DNA from: Oculina patagonica
Lineage: Eukaryota
Direction of reading: 5' to 3'
DNA: 64,000 nucleotides
Assembly (NCBI RefSeq): GCF_052425735.1
Contig: NC_135761.1
Span: forward strand, 12,400,001-12,464,000
Under the pieces are notes generated by a model that searched no databases, had not been told where the DNA came from, and saw only the letters and a program-made list of their open reading frames with translations. Shown piece by piece: positions 1 to 41,600 of this stretch (the first letter of the stretch is position 1; each line of letters opens with the position of its first letter). Both the position numbers and the translations under genes were made by a program.

Positions 1-1
1 A

Positions 2-316
2 GTTAAAGTTGGGGACGTAGTTACAGTTTTTGAAGAGAACAAAAAGAGAGGAAAGTGGAAATTGGCAGTGGTAGAAAGTCTTATCACAGGTAGAGATAGT
101 GTTGTCAGAGGCGCAAACGTAAGAGTCATTGCCAAGGGAAAACCTGTGCGCATTTCCAGACCTGTTCAAAAGCTGTACCCCATAGAAGTCCAAAGTACCT
201 TTGAAGGGAGGAATCAAGTTAGGATTAGGCCGGTAAGGGAACACGCTAGGCGAAACCCGACAAGATCGGCTGCTTTAGATTCTAGATGGAAAACAAAACA
301 AATGCTTGACTCGTAG
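2..316 (+). CDS. C-terminal end of BEL/Pao LTR-retrotransposon polyprotein (post-integrase DUF5641-like region), 5' partial
   Basis: Open frame from base 2: VKVGDVVTVFEENKKRGKWKLAVVESLITGRDSVVRGANVRV...RPVQKLYPIEV. This matches the BEL/Pao motif GDxVxV..W.L..V..L..G.D..VR...V....RP..KL.P.E. Stop TAG at 314-316 is followed by a polypurine tract and an LTR. Confidence 0.9.
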   Translation, partial: VKVGDVVTVFEENKKRGKWKLAVVESLITGRDSVVRGANVRVIAKGKPVRISRPVQKLYPIEVQSTFEGRNQVRIRPVREHARRNPTRSAALDSRWKTKQMLDS

Positions 317-335
317 GCGAGTCAAGGGGGGAGAG

Positions 336-852
336 TGTCGGAAAATATTCCACGTATAATTGATTATTAATTTAGACCGTAACGCAATGCCACGAAATAT
401 TAACTATTATACTGATTATTATTAAACAAAAAGGTTGTAACTCGTAGATTTCGTGACATAATTTCGCAACAATGTAAACAAAGTCCGTAGTTTTATTACT
501 GTAAAAGAACTGATGTAATTGCACGCGTATAGCTAGCTAAATTAGGGAAGAGAACGTGCTATTGTGAAATAGGAATTAAATTTAGTAATATTACAATACT
601 TAGGCTTGGGATTTTACAGTACTCGTGATCGTGGGGAAATTACTAGTTTCGCAAGATATGCTATGAAAATTGTAGTAACGTATATTGTAAGGTCAGATCG
701 TGTTAGAATTGTTAACGTAAAGAACTACTGGAATGTTAGATTGTTGAATCGCTAGATTGTTGGATTGTACTTGAGAATAAATCTGTAACGAAGAAATACA
801 GTCCTCTTGATTGTTAACCAGCGACTGCGGGATTTACAAAGATTCCGCGACA
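336..852 (+). mobile_element. 3' LTR of BEL/Pao retrotransposon, inserted antisense in a KIF28 intron
   Basis: Polypurine tract AAGGGGGGAGAG (324-335) is immediately followed by TGTCG. The LTR ends CGACA at 852 (TG...CA inverted termini) and contains AATAAA at 776-781. Confidence 0.85.
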
Positions 853-1732
853 TCCATAGTGTCTAATTTGTTTTAGTTTTGGGATCTTCCCACATGGTTC
901 TGAAGTATAGGGTTACTTCATTTTAATGAGATTTAATGTGATCTCTTTTTAATGCAACCTTGCCTTTATTTCTTAATAAGTCAGTTTTTTAGAAAACAAT
1001 GTGTATGTGGTAGAAAATAAAGCATTAGCTGGAATGAGCCAGAATGAAGTAAGGGCAGGGCTAGGATGGATACTTGAGCTAATGTGAATCAACGGTCAGC
1101 CAGGCGACATACAGGGGCATAGCAAAACATGGAGTACAAGAATTCCTGGATTCATTATTTCCTCCTACATGTATGATGTATTTAACTGCAGCTGTACTAA
1201 GGTAAGTAAGTTAGTGAATGTAAGCAAGTGAATAATGTGAATAGACAAACTGAAAAAAGCAACAGGACAGAAGCTTTGTTTTGAATGTTTTTTTTTACTG
1301 CAGCTAAGCTGTGTTTGTGCAGGTTTTCATTGTTGGTTTTTTTTCTTTTGTCATAATAAAATTTTAGCAAACAGTGTATTGTACAATGTGTTGTTCCAGA
1401 AAATATCCATACCCCTCCCACGGAAGGCTTTTTTGTTTGAATCCCCCTGCCGCTCCATAAATTCCAGGTAAGTTCCATACTTTCCTTAAAAGTTTGGGCT
1501 TTTGAGATCCCCACCCCCTCTTGGAATTTCCAATGACCTTCCATGGGGTGGGTATGGATATTTACTAGAACTGCACAATAGGTTTAACAATAACAACTTC
1601 TGTAAATTAATAATGCAAATTTACAGAAGAGGAAAAATATTGCAAATTAGAAAATGATACTTATTGACCATTTTGTCAAAAAAGAAAAGGCTATATTAGT
1701 ATTCCCATACAAGAACAATGTATAGAACATAC

Positions 1733-4700
1733 TCATTTCTCTGCCACCAGTGTCCAGGGTGAGTCCTCCACCTTCAAACATTTTCTTTAGCTTTTCATTT
1801 TCTTCTCGTAACTCACGAATCAGTTTGTCCATTGGATTTTCATTAACCACTGCCTTGTTTTTGATCTTCTTTGCACGATCGGCATATCTGTTGAAACAAA
1901 ATGCAGTCTGAACAACTGGTACTAGTACATAAAAGAGAACTCTTTGGTCAGGAGAGCAATAAACACAAGCAATTTGCTTTGTCTACTGTATGTAGTGTTC
2001 ATTGTTTGGACTAAAATCTAACATTGCCTTATCTGTAAAATGGAACAGAAAATCAAATTGATTACAAAATCTACATTTTGGATTGACTGAATTAGGACCA
2101 CTACCAATGCCTGTAAGTTTCTAAAAAAATTTTCTAACATTTAACGATTCATCAAGTTAAATCAAAGGAAATCATAACCGTGACAGTGGTATTAAATCTG
2201 ATCTTAATTAGCACAATTTTTCAGGATTTAATTTAACCATTTTGTCCTTATTTTCAGTTGCAATTAAGAAGGTATTTAACACGAGAGACAGTGTTTCATC
2301 ATACTTCCAAACACCTCGAGTTTCGTCAAAAAGACTGCACTGCGTATTGTATGACAATGTTCAACCCTCTTTCTCTGCTTAGTGTTTGGAAATGCAATGA
2401 AACACAGCCTCTTGTGTTTGATGTATCACATAAATGTCATGCTTACGGCACCTCAACGTTCCCAGAGTTTCATCATAATTGATATCAGCTGGAGACAATG
2501 CAGCTATCATGATGGTCTTGCTGTTGCCGCCCAAAGCATTCTGAAGCAGTTTGGTGAGCACAGAGTCACGGTATGGTACCATAACCTTTTTTTTACCCAT
2601 AGACAGGTCAGCCAAGGCGGAGATCACGTTACCCAGTGCGGACAGGGATTTGTTGATGTTGGCGCCTTCCTTGAGTCTGTCTCCTGTGGCACCAGTGCTG
2701 TCTGCTCTTTCACTTCCTGGTAAATTTGTGACAAATAAATAAAAATGATTTATCGTGCTGCAGTTTTCTAATTAACAATTAGACTACGAGCCCAAGTTTA
2801 TAATGAGTGAATAGTCAACAAGGGGCAGCCAAGTTGACTATGGCTCATAGAAAACGAGGGCAAGTAGTCTTACTAATATTGTTTTTGTACAAAATGTAAA
2901 GAATTGTTGTTGTAGAATTGTGAGGCTTGAACCAAGACCACTTAATCTTGGAGTCTAGTGCACAAAACCATAGGTCAAAAAGCTGCCCAGTGGAGACCAA
3001 ACTGTACCCTCCCTGTCCCTGGGAGGTGCGGTGACCTAATGGTTAGTGCGTCGGACTCTGGATCTAGCATTCTGGGTTCAAGCCGTAGCCGGGGCACTGT
3101 GTTGTGTTCTTAGACAAGACACTATGCACTCGTAGTGCCTCTCTCCACCCAGGTGTATAAATGGGTACTGGCGAATTAAATACTGGGGGTACCTAACCCT
3201 GCGATGGACTAGCATCTCATCCAGGGAGGTGTAGAAATGTACTCCCAATGGCTTCATAATACGGATACCAGGATAAGCTCCAGCATGATGGGCCACTAGG
3301 CTTGTATGCAGACTTTACCTTACCTTCTCAAACACATTAATAATTCATGATTTGACAAGCCAATCAGGATACGCCAATTTGGTCAGGTACGTGTGGTTTG
3401 AAAACCCGATGAAGCACTGGACAGAGGCTTTTCCACGATAGTTTGATGAAATATCAAACTCTAGAGTTTGATAAAACGTCAAACCCTTGTGATGCAAGGT
3501 TATCCTAATTTAAATATTAATGACACAAACACCGACTGAATAGACAAGCTTCTGTTTCTCGGGTTAAGTAGAATCACTCTAAAATTTACGTTTATAGTGC
3601 TAGTGTAAGTCAGAAACATTCCTGAACATCTCGTAGGGATCGACCACCGTTCTTATTCCCAACCAAGTTTTTGGTGAACGAATTTTGTGAGCCAATATTT
3701 TAAAAATAGACCATCCAGGTCCTCCAACTTCTCTTCAAGACTTTGCACGCGGTGAACATCATAATCCTTAAACACACTTCCCGGGTCAAGTAAAGAAGCT
3801 TAAAGGGATTTTTGCTTGCGCACTGTCTGGCAAGTTTGATTCTCAAAACCTCAACGGCTCACTTGTCCACTATGCTTTGACTGTGCAAACAAGAAATTTT
3901 CTTGCACATTTTTGGGCGGCCGAAACCGGCGATATTCATCCTCAGCAAACCTGTCCAGGTTTCAAAACTAGCAGGACGCCACTGCATGCAAATTGTGGCG
4001 GCTTGAAGTAAACAAGCTTAGTTGTGAAAAACACGGATCTTACATAATCATCTCAAACTATGCGCTAATTAAACAAAAGATAGCAACAGTTCAATGTTTT
4101 CGTGAATAGTATCCTTTGTAGGCAATAAGGCCCCGATTGAAAACTGTACGCTAGTTAAACAAAAGAAATAAAAAATTAAGTTTTCGTGAATAATATATTT
4201 TGTTTGCAATTAGGTGCCGATTGAGAAGCCATTTCAAAAACTCATGCTTCGTGTTTCATCGGGGTTTCCAAACACTCGAAAACAATAAAAGCACTCGGCC
4301 TGCGGCCTCGTGCTTTCATCAGTTTTCTCGTGTTTGGAAACCCCGATGAAACACTCGCATTCGTTTTTGAAATATTACTTACCTTGCCCTCCCTGCCCAC
4401 TTTATAAGATATGAACAGCTTGTACACAAACCTGCCAAATCCACCAAGTTGATGTTACTACTCTTCTTTGTTTCCTGTCCTGTAGCATTCTTGCTGATCT
4501 GGTCAAACACAATTGTCACCACTGTGTGAGCCCTAGAGCTTGTCGCATTCATCTGCGTCGCAGCCACTGTTCGATTGGCTGTGCCTAAAATTTGAAATAA
4601 AATGAGTTTGTCAGTAATTGGTGCATTTACTTCTTCCCCTATCCTTCGAAACAGGATTTTGAGTCAGCATATCTCCATTCCAGTTATCACGCTGGGCAAG

Positions 4701-7700
4701 CTGCGGGAATTTTTGCTACCAAATCAATGCAATTCTGTAGGGGCTTTTAACACTTTGACACATTATGACCAACCACCATCTACAGGTCAGGAGAGGTAAG
4801 TTTGCAGTTTTATGCCTTGATACCTTCTCATCATTGAAAAGTGGAATCCTGACTCAAAATCCTGACTCAAGATCCTGACTTTAACCTTAGATTATTTCCT
4901 TAATGTCATGTATGTCATTGTGACATAAAGGCTAACTTGTCACCAAAAGATGAGCTTACCGTATTTTCTCGGTTATAAGGCGCACTCGGTTATAAGACGC
5001 ACCCTAAACTTGGCAACTTTGTCATGTCAAGTTTCCAAACTAAAAATTTTGCGAAAACACTCGGTTATAAGACGCACCATGAGTTTGGGAGTTAAAAAGA
5101 TGCAGTCATCGATTTAAGGACAGTTCTCCATACAGAATTTGAATGTTTGAATGTTGTTCGTACTCCTTGGCACAATTTTCGAGTAAAGAGGTGAGATTTC
5201 TTGCTGATATAAGACGTAAATTTGCTCGAGGTAAACATCTTTTCATCGTTCATGCTTCGAATTTGGCTGCTTAGTAACCTGGCAGATGTGTAGTTACCAG
5301 TGACCACTGAGTTTGTAGCTTGGTTACCAAGTACCCAAAGCATGCTTCGTCTCGCTTCGCACTTTGTTTATCGAGTGTTTTTCAAAGATTCTCAGGCCTT
5401 TTTTGGTGTTTTCCTTGTCTTCTAAAGTCATTTATCAACTTTCCACGATGAGAAAGGTTTGTTTAATATAAGTATGCTTGATTTTCTTTGTCTGTTTCAA
5501 CATAATGCTGACAAAAGCAGTTGTTACCAAAACTTGTCAACTCATCAATGCCGCGATAATAAACTTCACGTTAAAACTTGCTGTTTCTTGTTCTAGAAGT
5601 GTGAAATATTATAAAAGTGAATGACCAACACCAAGAGTTTTCTTTTTTCTTATTTTAACTGCAAGTTTCGGTAAAATGGCGGCCATACTTGATTTTGTTG
5701 GGCGAAAATACTCGGCTATAAGACGCACCCCAATTTTGGTAAAAAATTCCTTAGAAAAAACAGATTTTTCTTGAAAAAACCGTGCGCCTTATAACCGAGA
5801 AAATACGGTATATAAGGCCCTTCTGGAAAGGTAGAGCCACACGTGCTTCAAGCAGGGTGACCAGGTAGTCTTAGTAACCCTGGCAGCAGCAACAGCAAGG
5901 CACTGTCTCACTGAAGGAATCAGTGGAAATAACTTCTATCTATCTGACAATGTTAACGTTACACTCTTCATGACAGTCATGTACCTTCTTCAATTCGACT
6001 TTCGATGTCTGCATAACTGACCACTGCCACTCTCTTTAAGTTTTGAACAAAGAAATTCCCCTCCTTTGGGTTTTGACGAACCTGTGATGAGCAAAATTCA
6101 GCAAATATCAGTAATTTGTACTGTCTTGTTAGCTATGAAACTTGTTATTTTTTTGGGTCAAGGATCTGTCACGTCTTTTTTTGGTCTTTAATAAAAAAAA
6201 TATGCATATTTTTTTTAGTCTTATCTCCTAGTGAACTTTTCATTTCGGGTTTTCGTTGCGATCAGTGGATCAGAAAATATTCATTTGAACTTTTTTTCAG
6301 TGACGTGTGTTCCAGAGATATTTAAGTCTTGTATTTTTTGGGTTAGAAATTTTGATGCCAGGTATTTTTTTGGGTCTAAAATTTCAGGCTTGTGTATTTT
6401 TGGGGGTTTGCAATATGAAGCTCCGTCGGACCCCCCCCCCCCCCCTGTCATGTATATGTTGTGGTTTAATTTTCATCTTGGTTCATTTTTTTCAAACCAG
6501 TTTATTTTTTTCAAACCAGTTCAATTTTTTTAAACCAGTTCAATTTTTTCAGGTCTTAGCACTTGTTGACAGGATTTCAGTAAATTTCCATTAGGTATCC
6601 ACTTTGTTATTATGGCTAATATTTGTGGTGATGCTTCTGTTCCAAGACAGAGGCTCTAACAAGTACTATTAGGTTTTTACGGGTAATTATTATTGTTTTA
6701 CATTTTATTTTATTTTTAACTTCATGATTTACTCTTGAGTAACAAAACAGAAAGTCACTGCACATTAATCTAAAAGTAGTTAAGTTATTGCCATGATGTT
6801 TTCATAATAAACAAGCTGCAAGACTTAATTTGAATTGAGTCTTTTTTTTATCGTTGTCATTATTTAATTTTCACCAGTGCTGTACAAGCAGTGTCTGACA
6901 TTTGCAGAATTTAGAATGCCGAATTCCAAAGGCGGAAATATTACAGACTGTAGAATCGCTTTGCTTGCGGTTAGCTTCACCCCAGTTTGCTTGCGGTTAG
7001 CTTCACCCCAGTTTGCTTGCGGTTAGCTTCACCCCATTTTGCTTGCGGTTAGCTTCACCCCAGTTTGCTTGCGGTTAGCTTCATCCCAGTTTGCTTGCGG
7101 GTTAGCTTCATCCCAGTTTGCTTGCGGTTAGCTTCTGTTTGAGCTTAGGGGTATTTGTACATGCTTATCAGGGTTAGGCACTTGTTTAAGTGAGAAGGAT
7201 TAAGCACTCAGTTTAGTGATTAGGGTTAAGCACTCAGTTAATAAGTGATTAGGGTTAAGCATTCAGTTTGGACGGTTAGCTTTTATTTGAGGTTAGGGCA
7301 TTGCACAACAAAGTCACCTATGCTTTTTCACCCAGTCACTAATTAAAAACAACAGGTATTTAGAATTTGATATTTGAGTTTAACTTTATTCTAAGAAAAA
7401 TGCATTTAAATACCCTTTCTACATGCTGCAGAAAATGACAACACAGTAGTATATTCAAGTTTAATGTTCTGAGTGCTAGCTGTTCAAGGATATGAACTGG
7501 TGGGTGAAAAAAGTAATTACAATTTCTTCAATTTTTCCCAGAAGGAGATTTGAATGAAGGAACAATGTCTTGTCGACACGATCAACTTTAATAGAGATTA
7601 AGTCTCCAACTGAAGAAGTAGCGTTTGAATACTCTTTGTGTCTCTCCGGAAGTTTTAGCGCCTTAGGCTACACCATGATTTTAAAAGCTAATGAGCTGTT

Positions 7701-10700
7701 ATGTTCATGGCCCACTTATGTTCCTTGCTGCAATCGCATGAACAGTTACGAGAATCCATTAAATCAATCTTCAGGAGAGATAAAAGTTTCGGACATTGAA
7801 TAGGTTTATCAACAATCTTAACACAACTTGTGCTCCACTGCTGCTCCGCATGAAAAACTGTACGAACAGATGGACAAACATGGCTGTCACTTTCACGTTG
7901 ACTTCGGAATAGTTGTCATGTCTGTTTACAAGTAATTTCTCAACCACGATGAGCAGCTCGAAGGAGAAATAGCACTTCGTAAAAATCTCTTTTAGCCACC
8001 ACTTTACTTTTGTCTGCTGAAATAAGCCCACTTCTTACTTGTCATTGTCGAGATATCCCACTTTGATCGTTCGATCGCTGTCTTCTTTCGAGTGAATTCC
8101 AAGCTGCTTCACGGTCTGGTATTTCAGGTAAGCTTGGCTTTGCTAATGTTAAAGAACTTGTCTTCGATAAATAGCGTTATTGGCGGCGATTCTTTTTTTC
8201 ACTTGTTTCTCTTTCAATGCCGCTAATTCTTTACAAAATGTTTCTTTCGAAACACATATGGCACGGTTCAGCCATCTTTCGAATTTTTTTAAGTCTCATT
8301 TGCTGTGAAGTGCGCATGTACGCATATTTAGCGGAGCGAATGGGAGTCTGGGACCGAATAAGTTATAATAACAACAAATCTGGGTGAAATGTGCAACAAA
8401 TCCTTCGTGGTCAAGAGGTTAAAGGCGCAGTACTACAGAGCGAGAGTTGAGCGAGAGGTCAGTGGATCAGGACCAGGTAAGGTTAGAGAAAAAAAAAAAT
8501 ATCTGTGTATAGGGGGTAGTGGGGATAGCAAAAAAAGGGGGGAGGGTGTAGGGTATATCAGGGGGGAGGTGAAGGGGAGGAAGAGAGGGAGGTAGGGACT
8601 GGAAATTTCCCGTAATTTTTCCGTGTTTATTCTTTTCACCCTCCTAAAAATACCATGCCCCTATTTTTCACCACACCCCAAAAGATGAAAGCCCTTTTCA
8701 GACAGTTGATAAATAAACTGGTTTAAAAAAATTGAACTGGTTCAAAAAAAATAAACTGGTTTGAAAAAAAATGAACCACTGACAAAAATTAAACCACAAC
8801 ATATACTTTGAGTACCCCCCTGGGTCAATTCTACACAAAATAAAAGATAGTTTTAACTTACCTGTAGACCACCCTTGGGGTTATTCTTGACAAGAAGGTC
8901 ACGAACTTGTTCATTGTAAATCTCTAACATACTAAAGGACACTTGGTATTTCTGTGCAATGGAAAAACAAATCAAAATTAAAAGGCCTAGATGAAACTTC
9001 TCTCCATGGTACACACAATTTACAGTTTGTATAGAGTGCAATCGTCTAGGTAGGAGTAGTTCTGAAAAGAACTGTTGTTAGTGACTGACGTTTTGAAATT
9101 TGACAACCACAGCAGAAGTCGTCTTCAGAGTCAAGTAAAAAGTTGTTGTCAGTCAATGATGTTATAAAGTCTGGTCCGTTGAAGCTGATTGGTCAGTTCT
9201 GTCATGATGTTATTGTTAGTAAGCCTCGTGGGAAGATTGTCTTGAAACAGTAATTGGTCAGTTTCGATCCATCTAATTTGACCAACCAGACGAATTAAGC
9301 GGCTTGACTTTTTTCCCTTCGTTTCAGATTATGACAATGAATACAAGACAGTGAAAAATAAAAATAAAACTGGTTTGAAAAAGAGAGCAACTCTTTACAA
9401 CCAAAGGGCTTCAAATCATGCTTTTCTTTAATGCAATTTCTATAATGATTATCATAATAAACTATTTGGCATCAGGACCAAGTCACACTTGACTTGCACT
9501 TACGATATCTCCTGAACTATTGGTCATTGCTTTAAACAACTCGTCGCAAGTGATGGGAACAATTCCCCTAAAAACAAAAAATGTATTTTCTGATTGTTAA
9601 TGTGCAGTTCCAAAAATTGCCCATAACAACCTCATAAAAGGTCACTGGGGTCTCAAGGGGTCTCAAAGGCCAAATTTTTTAATTGACAGCATGAAACTTA
9701 ACTGGAATTTCCAGAGGGGTGGGACCATGAGGGTTTCAACCAAAAGACAATCAAGGTTATAAGCCTGTCTGGAGGATTGTTCTGTTCAGATTGTGGAAGA
9801 TGCTTAATCCTCACAGTGCTCCCTCTTTACCCAGGGATTTAACTGGGTACCAGCAAATTCTGGGGTTAACTGGGCGAAAATGCTGGGGGGAGGGACCTGC
9901 TAATAGACTTGCATCTTAATCAGAGTACTGCTTTTGTCATTCCTTTATTAACAGCTCAAAGCATGGTTATGTTCTAATACATTGACATGAAAAATGACAG
10001 CTATCAAACCAAATCAAGTTAGTTCCGACTACTTACTTGTTGTTTCCATATCCAACCATGGAATATGACTTGCCAGCCCCTGTCTGTCCATAGGCAAATA
10101 GTGAACAGTTGAAACCTGCGAGTAAAATATGAAGTAAATTATTAGAAACAAGTGAAAGTACAGTCAAACCCCTTTATTTATTTCCAGTCTGGAATGGGAT
10201 ATCAAATTATACATTTTGGACTAGGATAGTGTGTGGAAATGCATCTTTAGGTCTAAGAGGGATAGAGGTTCTAAGGTTGCAGCACAATAACTCTTCTTAC
10301 AACATTCTAGAGTAATTCCCTCCCTCCCTTACTGGGAAAGAAAGGCACCAAGCTGAGCTGCCATAAAATGCTGGTTATAAGCCCTGGGCTTATACAACTT
10401 TGTAAGGGGTTTTGGCTGGGATTATAACTGGGGGAGCCTATATCCAGAGGGGCTTATATGGTAAGCAGCATTAAAAAACTGATTGGAAATGAGCTGGAGT
10501 CTGATAGTACAATGTTTTGGGAGAACCTTGGCAAGTTTATATGGAAAAGTTAATAATAATAATAATAATAATTTAAAAATTTATATAGCGCTTTTTACAT
10601 GTGCTGATCAAAAGCGCTTTACAGTAATTTCATTAAAAACAATAAAAAGAATACATATACATAAAACAACTAGAACCTAAAGATAAAATGTGATAAAAAT

Positions 10701-33271: not shown

Positions 33272-34221
33272 ACTTTAGTTCTAACTAAATCAGCTTATTT
33301 CTCAACTTTTTTTCTGATATTTCAGAATGACACCATGCAGTAGGTATCATTTGGAATTGTCACCAAAAAGGGTTTAGATGCTAATCGCAACTTACCGGTA
33401 TGTAACAAAATTCAAATTATGGCTAAAATATTGTTTCTATTGTTTGTTTGCTTCTTTTCTTTTAAACTTATAAAATTGTTTTATTTGTTATTGTTTTACC
33501 CGCACTTGAAAGTTACACAAAAGCATGTGAAATTAACATTCAGCAATGAATGGGTTAAAACATTTTGTTGAAAGTTTTGAGCTAGCCCTTAGAACTTTTA
33601 AAACATTTGAGCCAGAAGCATTAGTTTCATTACATTTTTAACAGCTTTGTTTCAAGGTCTTAAACTGGATCCACTACACGCAAACGCTCATGATCAAATT
33701 TCGGTACTGGGGGAGCTGCAGACCCCAACTTCCCCCCCCCCCCCGCACCTTGTACGCATATGCTATGCGTGGAGGAGGGAGGCCTCAACTGGTGTCTAGG
33801 AGGCCAGGGGTTCGTTTCCGGGCGGGGACTTAGATTTTTTTGTTTGTCCCATGCTAGTGTCATTGTTGAACAATTATAATTCATCTTTATTATTTAAATA
33901 TCACCCAGCTTAAAATTTACCTTTTTTATTATTATTTAGTACATAATTGATGATTTAGACATTGCTGATCCTAGCAGAACTAGTATGCAGGACGAGTGTC
34001 TTTTTTATCAACCTAGTAAATGCCCCCCCTCACCACATGTCTCTCGAAGCTCAGTTGGTTAGGGCACCCTTGGAACTGGGATCTGGGAGGCCATGGGTTC
34101 AATTCATGTTGGGACTCAGATTTTTTCTTTGTCCCATGCTTGTGTCATTGTTATACAATTCATCATCATCAATGTCTTTAATTTATACATTATCATGAAT
34201 GCCAACTGGTCAGTCTGCATA

Positions 34222-34745
34222 CCGTATTTACTTGAATAAGTGCCGCCGCCCTCGAATAAGTGCCGCATTTAGAGCAAAAAAGTTAATAAGTGCCGCCCCC
34301 GAAAAAGCGCTGTAGTCCCGATGCGGCGCTTATTCGATTAATTCCGTATAACTAAAAAAACACTACAAAGCATCTCTAACACAGTATTGGCAAATTTTTT
34401 TCATCAAAAGCGATGTTCTTCAGTTCAAAAAGATTTATTAAAGTTCTCTCAGAATTCTTGCAATACGCAGCTCTGTTGTGAAGGCCTTGCTTAAAATTGC
34501 AGTGACATTTTGTTAAAGTGCCAGAAGGGACGAATGGTGACAATCAAGAGATGCTCCTGTTAGTTACTGTAAAATTTTCGTTCCGATATAAGATATACCG
34601 TTAAAAATTAAAAGAAAAGATTTCTTTGTCGCGTCCAATTTTCAAATAAGCGCCGCCCTCAATTAAGCACTGCCCTCGAATAAGCGCCACATCTGAGGCA
34701 CGAAAAATTCAATAAGCGCCACGGCGCTTATTCGAGTAAAAACGG
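34222..34745. mobile_element. pogo/Tc2-like MITE
   Basis: TIR CCGTATTTACTTGAATAAGTGCCG / CGGCGCTTATTCGAGTAAAAACGG, TA flanks, internal AATAAG(C/T)GCC repeats. Confidence 0.8.
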
Positions 34746-35098
34746 TATGGCTAATTTTTCTGAGAAAAGATTAATTTTGATAAAAAAATAATTTTGATAA
34801 AATAACTTCTGTTCCAGATTTTTATGCAAGGAAAGCCATTTCTGATTTGCTGTGAAAGCTTGCCATTCACTTCATCTGGTAATGCAATATTTTTTAATAA
34901 ACCATCTGAAAGCAATGGTCACACTACACATCTCCGCGGTCTGGCCAAGACCTGTATGCGGCAAGTGCACAGCCTATTAACTGTGGAGTGTTAGGGCTCA
35001 GGTTTAAAGCAACGTTATGGTTTGCCTGGTAAAAGGGGGGTTGTTGCCTGGAGTAAAGGGCAGGCAGGGTCTATGTGAGACCCTTGCGCCTAGCTAAT

Positions 35099-35143
35099 GC
35101 CATGCTGATGAGTCCTAACAAGGACGAAACAGCTGTCCATGCC
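35099..35143 (+). ncRNA. Type I hammerhead ribozyme, copy 1 (catalytic core intact)
   Basis: GCCATG-CTGATGA-GTCC(TAACAA)GGAC-GAAAC-AGCT-GTC^CATGCC. All conserved core nucleotides are present; predicted cleavage after 35137. Confidence 0.9.
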
Positions 35144-35434
35144 TGCCACTCCACGGATATTAGGCTGTTCACATGTGTACAGGTCTTGGCCAGATCGCTG
35201 AGATGTGTAGTGCCACCATTGCTTTCAGACAGTTCATCATGACATATTTATGTCGTCACACGTGCATTAGCCATTAATTTGGTTATTCCACATCTCCTTA
35301 CGCATTGCCAAGACTTTACAGTCGCAGCCACAGCTCCAAAATGTTTTTATATGGAGCTGGCATTTAAAGCAACCTTCAGGTTTGCCACTGGAGTAAAGGG
35401 CAGGGTCTATGAGAGACCCTTGCGCCTAGCTAAT

Positions 35435-35479
35435 GCCATGCTCATGAGTCCTAACAAGGACGAAACAGCTCTCCATGGC
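35435..35479 (+). ncRNA. Type I hammerhead ribozyme, copy 2 (core mutated)
   Basis: GCCATG-CTCATGA-GTCC(TAACAA)GGAC-GAAAC-AGCT-CTC-CATGGC, with CUGA changed to CUCA and GUC changed to CUC. Confidence 0.8.
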
Positions 35480-35777
35480 TGCCACTCCACGGGTAACAGG
35501 CTGTGTGCATACGTACAGGTCATGGCCAGACCGTGGAGATGTGAAGTGCCACTATTGCTTTCAGATTGTTCATTATGACATATTTATGTCATCACATGTG
35601 CATTAGCCATTAATTTGGTTATTCCACATCTCCTTATGCATTGCCAAGACTTTACAGTCCCAGCCACAGCTCCCATATGTTTTTATGTGGAGCTGGCATT
35701 TAAAGCAACCTTCTGGTTCGCCACTGGAGTAAATGGCAGTGTCTATGATCTTATGTGAGACCAATACGTCTGGCTAT

Positions 35778-35822
35778 GCCATGCTGATGAGTCCTAAAAA
35801 GGATCAAACAGCTGTCCATGGC
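35778..35822 (+). ncRNA. Type I hammerhead ribozyme, copy 3 (GAAA box mutated, cleavage triplet intact)
   Basis: GCCATG-CTGATGA-GTCC(TAAAAA)GGAT-CAAAC-AGCT-GTC^CATGGC. Confidence 0.8.
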
Positions 35823-37914
35823 TGTCACTCCATGGGCAATAGGCTGTGTGCAAGCGTTCAGATCTTGGCTAGACCATGGAGATGTGTTGTGTGACCACTG
35901 CTTTCAGATGGTTTATTATGCAATATTTTTGTACTAAGTAATATGTAAAATAATGGACAGCCATAGAAGTTGGTTCTATATAGTGTCCCTATAACCAATA
36001 GTAAATTTATTAGGTTGTATTTCCAATATAAAAATTCTTAGAAACACTCACACTCTGGGTACCGACAAAGCATTGAATTAAAAAACTAGCCACCCCCATA
36101 TAACCTTTGCAAAAGGGAGCACAGAGAATGCAGTCTATAACTAACACAACCAGTACATATTTTAAGAACTCTTTATTTTTAAAGGCATCATTCTAAGGTG
36201 TAGTTCTTGAAAGTGGAGTATAGAAGGATTTAATATTAAGTTAATGCCAAGGAAAGTGTATTAGAAATGAATTTATATTATTGCTGGGGATGACACTAAA
36301 AATACATTTTTGTGGCACTTTTAGTATATTTACTAGTTCATCTATCAGTATAATCCCACTAATTACTGAGTATAAAGTTTCTAATTTTCCTGATCTAAAG
36401 TAATTTATCACCATAAAATAACAGAATAAAGCTGTTTAGAAATATCTACATGTCAGATTGAGATAGCTTGGAATAACCCTACTGCCTTTTAATTGTGCGA
36501 GGACAGTTTGATTCAGGTCCAATTATCAACCTTTGAAGTGCTAAAGTGATTAAATTGTTATGACAGACTAGCTAAATTGAACAGTAGTTCAAAACACATA
36601 ATCTAGTAGTATCCCTTTTCTAAAGTTGCAGAAATAAAAATAAACCTCTCCTTTCATTTTGTTATCTTAATGCACTGAACATTTAATCCTCATCACAATT
36701 ATGGCCTTAGGGTATCAATAGCCCAAAGTAAACAAGCATGTTTTGCACTCCACTTCTGGTCCCCAAGACCATACAGTGTTGTCTTCATTGACGACCAGAA
36801 GTGGAAGTTGCTGAAAAAAAAACATCAGTTAACTTTGGCTAGCAGAAGAAAATTATATTTTAGTGACTGTATTAATAATTTGCATTGCAATCTGTTAACA
36901 AGGCACATATACTTGAAATAAATACATCTCTATTCTATTTAATTCTTATTTTACATCTCCAGCATATAATATATTATACAAATTAAGATAATCACCTTCA
37001 AGATTTTCAGAAACTTGATAGATTCCATTTTTTCATAGGCATATATTTGCAGTATAAACTCTTTGCACCCAGGATATAAGAAATTCAGTTAAAAACTTGC
37101 ATTAATAATAGATTTAAAACATATAAAAGTAAAAATATCATATGTATAGTTTCTGATAAGAAAATATATTATTGTACATCCAAGGTAAATATATGATGTT
37201 TTCTGGATTGAACATCTAGTTGAGTTAAATTGAGAAGGCTGTAATAAAGCCAGAATATTATTTTACTTGATTGGCATGTTGATGATTGTTACCGGTACCA
37301 ACAACAGCATGACAATAAATTTGCTTATTCATTTGGAAGTGCACAGTTCCACACTGATCAGTGTCTTAATTATAATTATTCTCATTTACTTATGACTTGA
37401 ACAGATAAAAATATATTATACATCCACAATAACAATTAATTATAGTAAAAGTAAATCAGATACATTCATTTGAGGATTGAAATATTTCAACAACAAAAAT
37501 AATGGTATGATTAAGTATATTTTTGATAGTATGTGTTCTTCTCAAAACCATTATTGCTTACAGTGACAATGCAGAAATATTGTGACAAGTACAAGAGTCA
37601 CAAGAGAATAAAACTTTTTTTTGCAATTTCAATGTCTCAGAAGACAGAAGTACTATAGGGGGCAGGGAGAGTTAATTTCAAAGTTTCTGATATGGCAAAG
37701 AGGTAATCCAGCCATTGCGTTTGTAAGTTCAACAATACTGCAAAGAAGCCTGAAAAAAAAAATGGCTTCAACAGAATCCCACTGATGCCCTGCTTCTTTG
37801 CAATGTGGGTAAAACTGCAAACATATTGATCTTGCACGTATGGTGTTTGCACTCATACTTAGCAGTGAACATTTGCCACAACATTAACTGTGTATTGAAA
37901 AAAAGTGTTCTTAA

Positions 37915-38613: not shown

Positions 38614-41600
38614 CTAACTACTATCATAAGCACAATATACTTTGTTTTTCCTCGGTGAGGGAGACAGTGAATGGTGTCTGGGAGGAGAATCCCCAGTAAA
38701 AGAAGTTCTAACACCACTACCCTGATCTTGCCGTGCCTCTTGTATATGCTGCTGTTCTAAGAAGTTGTCCCTCATCACTGAACGCGAGAGTTGTAACCTT
38801 TCGTTGACAGCTGGGACTGGTATCCCTCTCGTTTTCTCTTCAATAGCTTCATGTGAAGCAGCACGTTGCACAGATTTGGAATCAACTGTTTTAATCTCAT
38901 AAGGATTTTGAATTTTCCTATTTGAGCCAATAGTAGGACTGCTGCTTGTTACAACATTTTCTGTCACCACCTGTTGTCTGTCGGTTTCACATTCTGCAGT
39001 AAGCCTTAGTATAGGTGGTTCGCATTCAGCGGAAGTGCTACTAAGAAGTTCTCTGTCATCTTCATTGATTACAGAGTGAAGTTTCTCAATCAATTGCTTT
39101 GTCAGTTTAACATTGGACTCCCTCACATTAGACGTTTTGTTTCCACCCTGTTTGCTTTCTTGAGCTTGCACACTTGTAAGAGCCGAGATCAAACTTGTGT
39201 CTTGAGGAAGGGTAGTACAATTTGCCCGTCGAGTAAGCGAAAGCACAGATCTGCCTGATTTTGCGGATTTGTTGGAATTTTGTGAAGTGTTTGATCTGGC
39301 ACTGTTTAGCCGTGAGGTGCTTTTAAGCCAGTTCTGACTGACTGACCTGTGAAGGTTTTTCATACTTGAGGAAGCAGCACTAGATGCAATCCAGGGGTCT
39401 CTCAGAGCCTGCTCTGCTGTCATGCGCTTCTCTGGATCTACCACAAGTAATCTGTCAATGAAGTGTCTCGCATGATCTGACACATCTTTCCATGCCTAAA
39501 AGGAAACAAGTTAAAACATATTCAATTACTTGAACCCCGTGAATTCCCAAAGTAAACATTGCTATCAAGTAGACTGGTGATAGAAAAAGAGCTCTTTGAG
39601 CCACAACTGAATTTTTTTATCCAAGTTTTGAACAAAGTATAGTTTTCATTCCTTGAAAATATATGACCAGCAGGTGATTCAAACATTTCTTTGATGCACA
39701 TGATTACAGATAAACTGCAGAATGTCTATTACACTGATATAAGACATTTTAGTCTCATGTGACTTAGTATGTCTGAGTAGCACACACTGAGTAGCATCTA
39801 AGTGGGATGCAGGAGGTAGTGGGTTCGAATCCCAGGAGACAAATTTTTTCTTTTTTTTTTTAACCCGTAGCACTAAAATGGTTTGTTTATTATATCGCTC
39901 TGTAGATATGCATTGCAGAATAATTTACATGTTAGCCGTAAATAAATTTATCAGAACATATAGACTGATTCAGGTACAAATGTACTTGTGCTGTTTCAAC
40001 TGAAAAGCTTTTCCTTTTCTTGCAAACAAGCAGCCACGCACTTGATTTTAGCCAACGCTCTGGTTTCTAGATAGATCCATCGTTAATGAAGCTTATGTGA
40101 AACCCGATTTAATTTTCGAATGCTCCTCCATGTAGGACACTAGCTCGAAAGATAGACACGAAAGTCATCGATCGATTAATGCTGATTAATCGCTCTCAAT
40201 GTTCACTTTTTTGGAGGTCGATTACTTAATTCTACATGTAATTGTCGGCCATATTTTGTTTCTTTGCTTCTGGTTTTTCTTGTAAACCCCTTTAAATTTT
40301 AAAGACTGCCTTTATATAGCCGCTTTTATATGGCCGCCTTGCTACACTATTTCTACAAGTATATCTGCTGGTCAGCGGAGTTGCAATGAGAAGTTTACAG
40401 ATGATGGACCAACCGACCAACCATGGCTACCCACTATACTCCTGAATAAATTCAGTCGTAAAAAGAGGACCTCATAAACTAAAAGAGAGAGACTTAAATG
40501 AACACAAATTGGAGGGAAACTTACTCTAAAAAAAGAAAATTAACACGAAAGAGGTAAATTTTTAAAATGAAGGAAATTTTTAAACACAAGGAAGCGCAGT
40601 TTGTGGCAACAAATTTTATTTCAACATTGAATGTTTTTGGCAAATCATTGTCAGATGTTGAACTGCCCTTCTGAAAACAGGCATGAACTGAAAATATCAT
40701 AAACAATATACCCGTAAACTATGTCTGGACGGGATCCTGAATTTGGGGTAGTATTAACGGAAATTAAGGTCAGGGAAATAAACATTTCACTTAGTTTATG
40801 TCGACAAAAATTTACGCTGCTTAAATTAACATGAATTTTATAATAATATTTTTTTACAATTTAAGGTATTCAGAACTTGAAAAAGGCCCATCCAGTTGTC
40901 CAGGGCAACTGGATTTTCTACCAGGCAATTAACATTCATGCTCATTTGCCTGATGGGCAAGGGCCCAGGCAAGATGTCTGCTGTCTCTATCATATAAGAA
41001 TAAAAACAAAGTAAACTAAGCATGCAACTGCCCCAGGCCAGTTCAAATTCCTGTAGGTGATCACTGACCACGAAAATCCAAAGTATCTGAACAGGAGAAA
41101 ACACAGAAGTTTACAGTCATCATGCTAATGATACGCAAAACAGAGTATATCACAACAACAGGAAAACTCATTGAGTCTCACTTACGAGATGAAGCGGCCG
41201 CCGTACAGTTAATCAAACTACTTTCCTTCACCCAGGATGAACAGATGGAACTTACGGAACCAATCAGATCGTCAAACTGATTTACCACCAATGCAGGATA
41301 ATATCATGCAGGAAAATATTCCAAGTCTGACTAACAAAACGACATCCCGTACAGACTGTGGGATCATATAGATCACTACACATCTTCGAAGGCATGTATC
41401 GGTATGTGTTTAATGGACACTCATAGCTGTCGCACTGCTCAGTCCGGAATGTTTCAATTTGATATTTCAGAGAGCTAATTGGTTAATGTTATAACTGGAT
41501 TGAATTTTTATAGTATATACTGCACTGCTATGAGTATTTGCCTGCTGTGGTTATAGCTGCGATCATAGCATGACCTGGTGGTTACCTCAAATTAATCTCC

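Follow-up and report, generated by a model that had tools for sequence, protein, structure and literature searches.

How does a small RNA that encodes no protein come to be written back into a chromosome? The question is raised by positions 34882-35930 of the window, by which we mean the whole 64,000-nucleotide (nt) stretch of Oculina patagonica contig NC_135761.1 analysed here (12,400,001-12,464,000, forward strand). The segment is one old insertion of a small, protein-free hammerhead retrozyme in a coral genome. We find that its target was opened by two nicks, staggered by 13 bp at this locus and by 9-13 bp across the family, and that at both nicks complementary DNA (cDNA) begins in one 5-8-nt zone, GGUUUAUU plus 0-5 template bases, 100-101 nt past the ribozyme cleavage site. 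The arms so produced are 5'-truncated at variable points and meet head-to-head, some of them running past the start site into a second unit. Our reading of the whole, to which we give a probability of roughly 0.8, is that a non-autonomous retrozyme was inserted by target-primed reverse transcription (TPRT) from both nicks, carried out by Penelope-type machinery, that is, a reverse transcriptase (RT) together with a GIY-YIG endonuclease (EN).

Metazoan retrozymes without long terminal repeats (non-LTR retrozymes) are described as non-coding tandems of 150-450-bp units, each with a type-I hammerhead, with a GC content of at most 50% and target-site duplications (TSDs) of more than 4 bp (PMC7229834; PMC7761336). 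Their reverse transcription and integration are an open point. The model of Cervera & de la Pena 2020 has a 'properly primed' circular RNA (circRNA) reverse-transcribed into tandem cDNA, and in this founding paper Penelope-like elements (PLEs) are named only as candidate helpers (PMC7229834); the primer is left open there as 'DNA target-primed or a small cellular RNA' (PMC7229834; PMC7761336). The available text of the two papers gives no fixed start site, inverted arms or junction anatomy, features that we tabulate here for the window family and that point to target priming at both nicks. A full-text search with partial coverage of the literature found no paper joining animal retrozymes with inverted or truncated insertion anatomy.

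Anatomy of the insertion

The element is flanked by a 13-nt direct repeat, ATGCAATATTTTT, whose two copies at 34882-34894 and 35918-35930 are 100% identical and were recovered both by repeat search and by direct reading. A first-pass annotation, made from the letters of the stretch, had placed a 12-nt TSD at 34883-34894 and 35919-35930; the duplication is there, and the 12-mer is ATGCAATATTTTT minus one A that can be assigned to the element or to the TSD. Next to the left copy lies a 5'-truncated arm of 96 nt on the minus strand (34895-34990, unit positions ~120-214), the inverted copy of the last ~93 nt that had been reported. Inverted-repeat search pairs 34886-34959 with 35854-35927 (74 nt, 85%) and 34968-34990 with 35826-35848, and local alignment equates 34896-34990 with unit positions 120-213. 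Read on the minus strand, the 3' tail of this arm, toward the left TSD, is GGTTTATT followed by A. The two arms join at 34991-34995, where local alignment leaves 0-5 nt of filler or ambiguous bases.

The direct arm, on the plus strand, is a 336-nt tandem array of 2.6 copies according to Tandem Repeats Finder (TRF), or ~2.7 units over ~34996-35917. It is 5'-truncated as first described; local alignment moves its start from 35003 to ~34993-34996, with the last ~7-11 nt of a unit at 34996-35002. TRF and alignment then delimit unit 1 (35003-35362, 360 nt, with a 20-nt G-rich insertion at 35027-35046) and unit 2 (35363-35698, 336 nt, our coordinate reference q1-336), and alignment a partial unit 3 (35699-35917, q1-213), which stops at the fixed 3' end of the family, GGTTTATT. 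From the fold of the main subfamily and direct reading, 35894-35917 holds a 3' terminal hairpin (ACCAC TGCTTTCAG ATGGT) and then the U/A-rich start zone TTATT.

Each of the three units contains a type-I hammerhead (Rfam RF00163) on the plus strand, one of them above the gathering score of 34: copy 1, at 35099-35143, scores 35.1 bits, with predicted cleavage after 35137. The other two bear lesions, a CTCATGAG core and a broken helix III pair in copy 2 (35435-35479, 21.0 bits, cleavage after 35473) and GGAUCAAAC in copy 3 (35778-35822, 32.8 bits, cleavage after 35816). In the main subfamily the core is intact, CTGATGAGTCCTTACAAGGACGAAACAGCTGTC, and this pattern matches 148 genome sites against 0 for the control. 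The units are non-coding and arranged head-to-tail, 336 nt long here and 342 nt in the main subfamily, with GC contents of 0.47 and 0.50, respectively.

With a type-I hammerhead per unit, repeats within ~150-450 bp, a TSD of more than 4 bp and no LTR, primer-binding site (PBS) or polypurine tract (PPT), the element is, judged by its sequence, a non-autonomous, non-coding metazoan non-LTR retrozyme, a new family of a known class. Its units of 336-342 nt differ from the 220-240 bp given for the coral family in PMC7229834. Plant LTR retrozymes are also non-autonomous and hammerhead-bearing, and form circRNAs (Cervera et al. 2016, PMC4918200), but they have type III hammerheads, LTRs, a PBS and PPT, 4-bp TSDs and a Gypsy-type helper, none of which characterizes the window family.

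At its two outer ends the composite reads ...TTTCAGATGGTTTATT(A), 101 nt 3' of the hammerhead cleavage position (cleavage after 35816, end at 35917); in the main subfamily this distance is exactly 100 nt. The claim that both ends stop at the same point, ~100 nt past cleavage, is therefore upheld. Internal units run on as ...ATTATGACAT and the flank reads ATGCAAT, an overlap of 3 nt in which the first three bases of the right TSD copy (ATG) equal the continuation of the template. This overlap had been noticed as a microhomology, and it fits the excess of template-like bases that we find family-wide.

A start zone shared across the family

Searching the coral's own 529-Mb assembly with unit 2 gave 91 matches at ~45 places. 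The 45 merged places, minus 7 copies of one event within a larger repeat or haplotig, yielded 38 independent loci, a set composed of the best-scoring candidates and the first-listed pattern matches. At all of these loci the 3' end is fixed as ...CAG(A)TGGTTTATT and the 5' ends vary, the arms reaching 15-874 nt back from the tail and each of them terminating at GGTTTATT(+0-5). For the 28-nt tail GTGTGACCATTGCATTCAGTGGTTTATT there are 129 genome sites, 57 of them exact, against 0 for the reversed control, and the shared end is therefore not a product of chance. The ends are not scattered at random either: 42-52 of them fall in the zone ~100 nt past cleavage, which agrees with the first-pass proposal of a fixed internal priming site as opposed to the ribozyme-generated end.

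Two clean, opposed and abutting arms with outward tails are seen at 15 of the 38 independent loci, and opposed pieces of more complex form at 6 more, so that a second arm is present in 15-21 loci; this inverted arm measures 15-480 nt and is missing at ~17 of the 38. At ~14 loci the composite as a whole lies between TSDs of 9-13 bp (mode 11). In most cases the inner junction between the two arms shows a gap or overlap of only about -7 to +2 nt. Seven of 52 arms reach or pass about one unit (339-874 nt) and so form partial tandems, and none of 42 ends carries an A-rich or simple-repeat tail.

The junctions themselves hold further information. Internally, the 342-nt unit of the main subfamily continues as GGTTTATT-TTTGACATTTTTATGTC, and at least 3 bases matching the continuation TTTGACAT follow 10 of 42 independent ends, against 4% under the null (p = 6e-6). 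Base by base, with other positions of the flank as background, position +1 is A or T in 40/42 ends (background 62%), T stands at +2 in 23/42 and at +3 in 25/42 (background 31%), G at +4 in 14/42 (background 19%) and A at +5 in 22/42 (background 31%). Because templated bases follow the end, the 'fixed site' is better described as a zone of ~5-8 nt whose junctions are templated or microhomologous, and the ATG overlap at the window locus can be read as one instance of this family-wide pattern. In the minimum-free-energy fold of the circular monomer, a single-sequence prediction that carries no covariation support, the end falls in an unpaired UUAUUUUU linker, with a 7-bp hairpin, ACCAUUG-CAUU-CAGUGGU, predicted on one side and a GACAU...AUGUC hairpin on the other.

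That both target strands primed, as the first-pass annotation had suggested, follows from tails that face outward and abut the TSD, together with a paralogous empty site that lacks both arms. This empty site belongs to a sister two-armed insertion, C10:13859127, which lies in repeated host sequence. The 41-mer predicted for the empty site, with a single TAAAAACAGTGT, has 5 exact matches in the genome and 2 more with 3 mismatches (control 0), which implies that both arms came in one event and that 12 bp of target were duplicated. One arm of this insertion has TTTG past GGTTTATT, bases that are derived from the element and not from the target.

Contigs from a coral-metagenome run are identical to the locus over 1.1 kb, and contigs of three other coral organisms (B, C and D) span one or both junctions of the insertion, which shows it to be present there. 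Since the site is occupied in everything examined, the window insertion is old, which fits the 10-19% divergence of the units and the loss of CpG. A contig of organism C that joins 35182 to 35859, a two-unit skip of 676 nt, was not used, one of its sides being 37 nt long with 88% likeness; a species difference in unit number, a paralogue and an assembly collapse are all possible explanations for it.

Penelope-like elements as candidate helpers

Endonuclease-positive PLEs show heavy 5' truncation, partial tandems and, directly against the 5' end, an inverted copy that is itself 5'-truncated (Craig et al. 2021, PMC8557442; also Evgen'ev & Arkhipova 2005, cited there). They carry a hammerhead inside a repeated terminal region, with a short terminal extension that puts the 3' end tens of nt past the ribozyme (PMC8557442). 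All of the published structural hallmarks are found in the window family, which combines variable 5' truncation and a fixed 3' end with inverted 5'-truncated copies and partial tandems; the attribution of the footprint to PLE integration is thus matched by the literature and recurs across the family. The two differ in that the window element has no open reading frame (ORF), its whole length being that of a PLE pseudo-LTR (pLTR), and in that PLEs have a minimal hammerhead and the window family a canonical type I, in which helix II has 4 bp and helix III is palindromic.

It has been proposed that PLEs mobilise retrozymes by acting on primed circRNA (PMC7229834; bioRxiv 10.64898/2026.07.22.740005), and Li, Clavereau & Pollet 2026 regard animal retrozymes as non-autonomous PLE derivatives (bioRxiv 10.64898/2026.07.22.740005). 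Their study draws on co-occurrence in Xenopus, pLTR similarity and local amplification into arrays, whereas the window family contributes an insertion footprint, from a cnidarian, and has no detectable pLTR similarity.

The coral genome contains 860 GIY-YIG candidates, often as inverted pairs, and one readable autonomous PLE family with an open frame that joins RVT_1, a zinc finger and GIY-YIG. At L074:6007-9708 an autonomous-type PLE is made up of two 5'-truncated arms in inverted orientation, with 99.9% identity between them; it borders on an (AGAT)n microsatellite at one side and shows no evident TSD. The readable PLE has a fixed 3' end, ...ATATTTATT(CTT), ~62 nt past a putative minimal hammerhead (CUGANGA...GAAA cores) that was recognized by motif inspection only and has no Rfam match. 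Because this PLE shows the same arrangement, a 3' end tens of nt past the ribozyme would be normal for the PLEs of this genome, provided that the putative hammerhead is real. The only sequence that it has in common with the retrozyme is a terminal TTTATT, which may be chance, and its hammerhead is of the different, minimal kind.

Some further loci of this genome deserve mention. On C2, a GIY-YIG match is preceded on the same strand, at a distance of 2.76 kb, by a canonical type-I hammerhead, CTGACGAGTCCCAAAGAGGACGAAACAGCTGTC (C2:2850685/C2:2853444), and the locus is a candidate autonomous PLE whose ribozyme is of the retrozyme type. A retrozyme-like piece beside a PLE fragment in L073 was considered as a partner and belongs instead to a different, ~245-nt family: the hammerhead unit at L073:5960-6205 has ends that form a perfect 36-nt inverted complement (a rod-like fold), and its helix II is GGCC/GGCC against GTCC/GGAC in the window family, a compensatory change. 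The unit stands immediately beside a 5'-truncated PLE copy (6211-7129), and a like arrangement occurs on C10 and C1154. In L069-L072 and at least 10 further places (for example, C3:1323294), the GIY-YIG match comes from identical 1371-aa open frames; a 671-aa piece of this frame in L069 matches superfamily 1 (SF1) helicase domains (AAA_19, Viral_helicase1 and AAA_30), and the whole looks like another multi-copy element. In L075 a PLE fragment lies between long tandem arrays (1-5140 and 8466-10000) whose period is close to 44/88 bp.

The copied RNA and the rival explanations

What kind of RNA was copied can be approached through the lengths of the arms. Thirty-six of the 52 exceed 105 nt and hence were copied across the ribozyme cleavage site, and as most arms cross this position the RNA was probably continuous there, either uncleaved or religated. 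Arms of about one unit or more also contain the start zone internally. Arm lengths show no excess at 100 nt (2 of 52 arms, with 1.7 expected), and copying therefore did not as a rule run off the end of self-cleaved linear RNA. They cluster instead at 227-237 nt, where a 13-bp palindromic hairpin has its base, and we take this cluster for an RT pause. The circular or multimeric template of the first-pass annotation fits arms that cross both the cleavage and the start sites, without a circle being required; its further proposal of more than two rounds of copying is made doubtful by changes that units 1 and 2 of the window copy share.

These two units have in common an 8-nt deletion and a 1-nt insertion, together with GTGCCAC for GTGTGACC and GTTCAT for GGTTTAT, none of which is found in unit 3, the inverted arm or the main subfamily. 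Their identity to each other is 88-90%, and that of either one to unit 3 is 81-84%. All other loci have 1.6 units or fewer. The simplest reading of this comparison is that the window copy began as a 1.7-unit insertion and that an internal unit was later duplicated; heterogeneous templates are an alternative origin of its differing units.

A number of observations weigh against the proposal of a PLE-mobilized, circular template, and we bring them together here. A tblastn search with the PLE ORFs found no RT or EN similarity within 1.5 kb of the 45 loci, and no GIY-YIG match, among those listed, lies within 5 kb of a tail match (by coordinates compared by eye). The autonomous PLE sharing hammerhead and tail that the first-pass annotation had anticipated did not emerge among the 45 loci, the listed GIY-YIG matches and the one readable family. 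The stretch matched no sequencing run recorded as RNA, so that self-cleavage and the circle remain predictions. An empty allele of the window site was not seen in the assembly, the coral-metagenome run or the contigs of organisms B, C and D. Unit identity is 92-100% within an arm and 91-97% between copies, which makes the rolling-circle test non-discriminating, and the derived changes common to units 1 and 2 are unlike the expectation for repeated copying of one circle: three turns would give units identical at birth, and the observed units differ. Autonomous PLEs, finally, make partial tandems without any known circle (PMC8557442), and these presumably linear elements form inverted arms of the like kind as well (PMC8557442; L074).

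This last point favours a serious rival, to which we allow somewhat less than even odds: PLE-type TPRT took place at both nicks on a linear RNA, either an uncleaved multimer on which copying began internally or a unit-length RNA ending in a U-run. Extra units would then arise by the PLE RT jumping from the 5' end of one template to the 3' end of another. The rival expects a linear RNA ending in GGUUUAUUUU, and the circle model a circle joined at the hammerhead site. In keeping with the former, the direct arm at C12:3700460 begins exactly one unit back, at q215; arm lengths drop off fast, with only 7/52 at about one unit or more; and the T-run found internally, where units join, differs in length by ~1 T from copy to copy. 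Yet nothing known makes a unit-length RNA with ends at q213/214, the hammerhead cutting 100 nt upstream, and 5' ends do not clearly accumulate at q214. Every multi-unit arm continues through the T5 run, which is thus no obligatory terminator; this also weakens the idea that the terminal T5 run is a terminator for RNA polymerase III. Moreover, the hammerhead is kept intact in young copies, and coral retrozymes have been shown to circularise (PMC7229834). The sequence data are compatible with a circle and with a linear multimer alike. We put a religated circle at only just under an even chance, consider an uncleaved linear multimer unlikely, and regard a unit-length linear RNA with template jumping as a good deal more doubtful still.

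A second rival changes the enzyme. The family might be a passenger of a long interspersed nuclear element (LINE), after the manner of a short interspersed nuclear element (SINE), sharing only the 3' recognition hairpin, with its inversions due to twin priming of the L1 kind. TSDs of 9-13 bp, 5' truncation and a 3' stem-loop by the start site fit such a passenger, as they would fit 'stringent' LINE/SINE pairs, and LINE RTs are very abundant, swamping the 5470 RVT_1 candidates found genome-wide. The family has no poly(A) or simple-repeat tail (no search was made for a shared LINE tail). In L1 twin priming the second nicked strand primes internally, leaving an inverted 5' segment that lacks the 3' end and is joined by microhomology. 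The likeness lies in second-strand priming and inversion; the difference is that both window arms carry the 3' end and start in one 3' zone. About half of the loci are two-armed, a PLE trait (PMC8557442), and the hammerhead links the family to PLE terminal repeats. We regard LINE mobilization as improbable.

Next to no credence attaches to a DNA-level object, that is, a miniature inverted-repeat transposable element (MITE) or foldback with terminal inverted repeats (TIRs), or a local satellite reshaped by unequal crossing-over and by the formation of palindromes, in which case the 13-mer would be fortuitous: the ~95-nt inverted termini of the window copy and the tandem array inside it would suit such an origin, but the arm is 15-480 nt long or absent (~17/38 loci), the inner ends are random truncations, the TSD is 9-13 bp, the paralogous empty site records a clean one-step insertion with duplication and a like end recurs at 129 dispersed sites, and a MITE or other TIR DNA transposon, the fixed-TIR alternative of the first-pass annotation, is ruled out by arms that vary or are absent, TSDs that vary in length and inner ends that are random.

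Returning to insertion by Penelope-type TPRT from both nicks, the sequence of events might be as follows. The 3'-OH of each nicked strand would pair with a few bases of the unpaired U/A-rich linker between two hairpins, and the annealed 3'-OH would be extended by a PLE RT supplied in trans. The template would be continuous across the ribozyme site, as a religated circle or an uncleaved multimer. The two nascent cDNAs could then prime each other by microhomology, completing the insert; at the window copy, one of units 1 and 2 would stem from a later local duplication. More specifically, and only tentatively, we suggest that a PLE-type RT may start internally on a closed, ribozyme-made circRNA, the U-rich linker beside the hairpin aligning the nicked 3'-OHs in a telomerase-like manner.

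Neighbouring sequence

Just upstream of the insertion, 34230-34740 of the window is a repeat of TCGAATAAGCGCC-type direct and inverted motifs. Its summed contig depth is 100-1000x that of unique flank in all four runs, which indicates a very high-copy element. At ~33977-34150 the loose-end consensus of many contigs, ...GGCCATGGGTTCGATTCCCGTCG, is tRNA B-box-like and suggests a repeat of tRNA origin; ARAGORN predicts no tRNA between 33000 and 37000. A 289-aa open frame with a GTG start lies on the minus strand at 38614-39483, 2.7 kb downstream of the insertion.

Significance

The idea of a circular template has already been published as a hypothesis (PMC7229834). The window family adds evidence, drawn from the footprint, that the target primed copying at both nicks, and it supplies a defined start zone. 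The classification of the element is unchanged by it, and an existing hypothesis gains support from the footprint. There is no in vitro system for the PLE transposition cycle (PMC8557442). The family is small and fairly homogeneous, and its start zone, adjacent hairpin, junction statistics and in-genome empty site offer handles for a trans-complementation assay. Should copying indeed begin internally on a closed circle, the junctions described here, with their start zone, templated 0-5-nt overlap and use of both nicks, would be the first natural record of TPRT without a free RNA 3' end.

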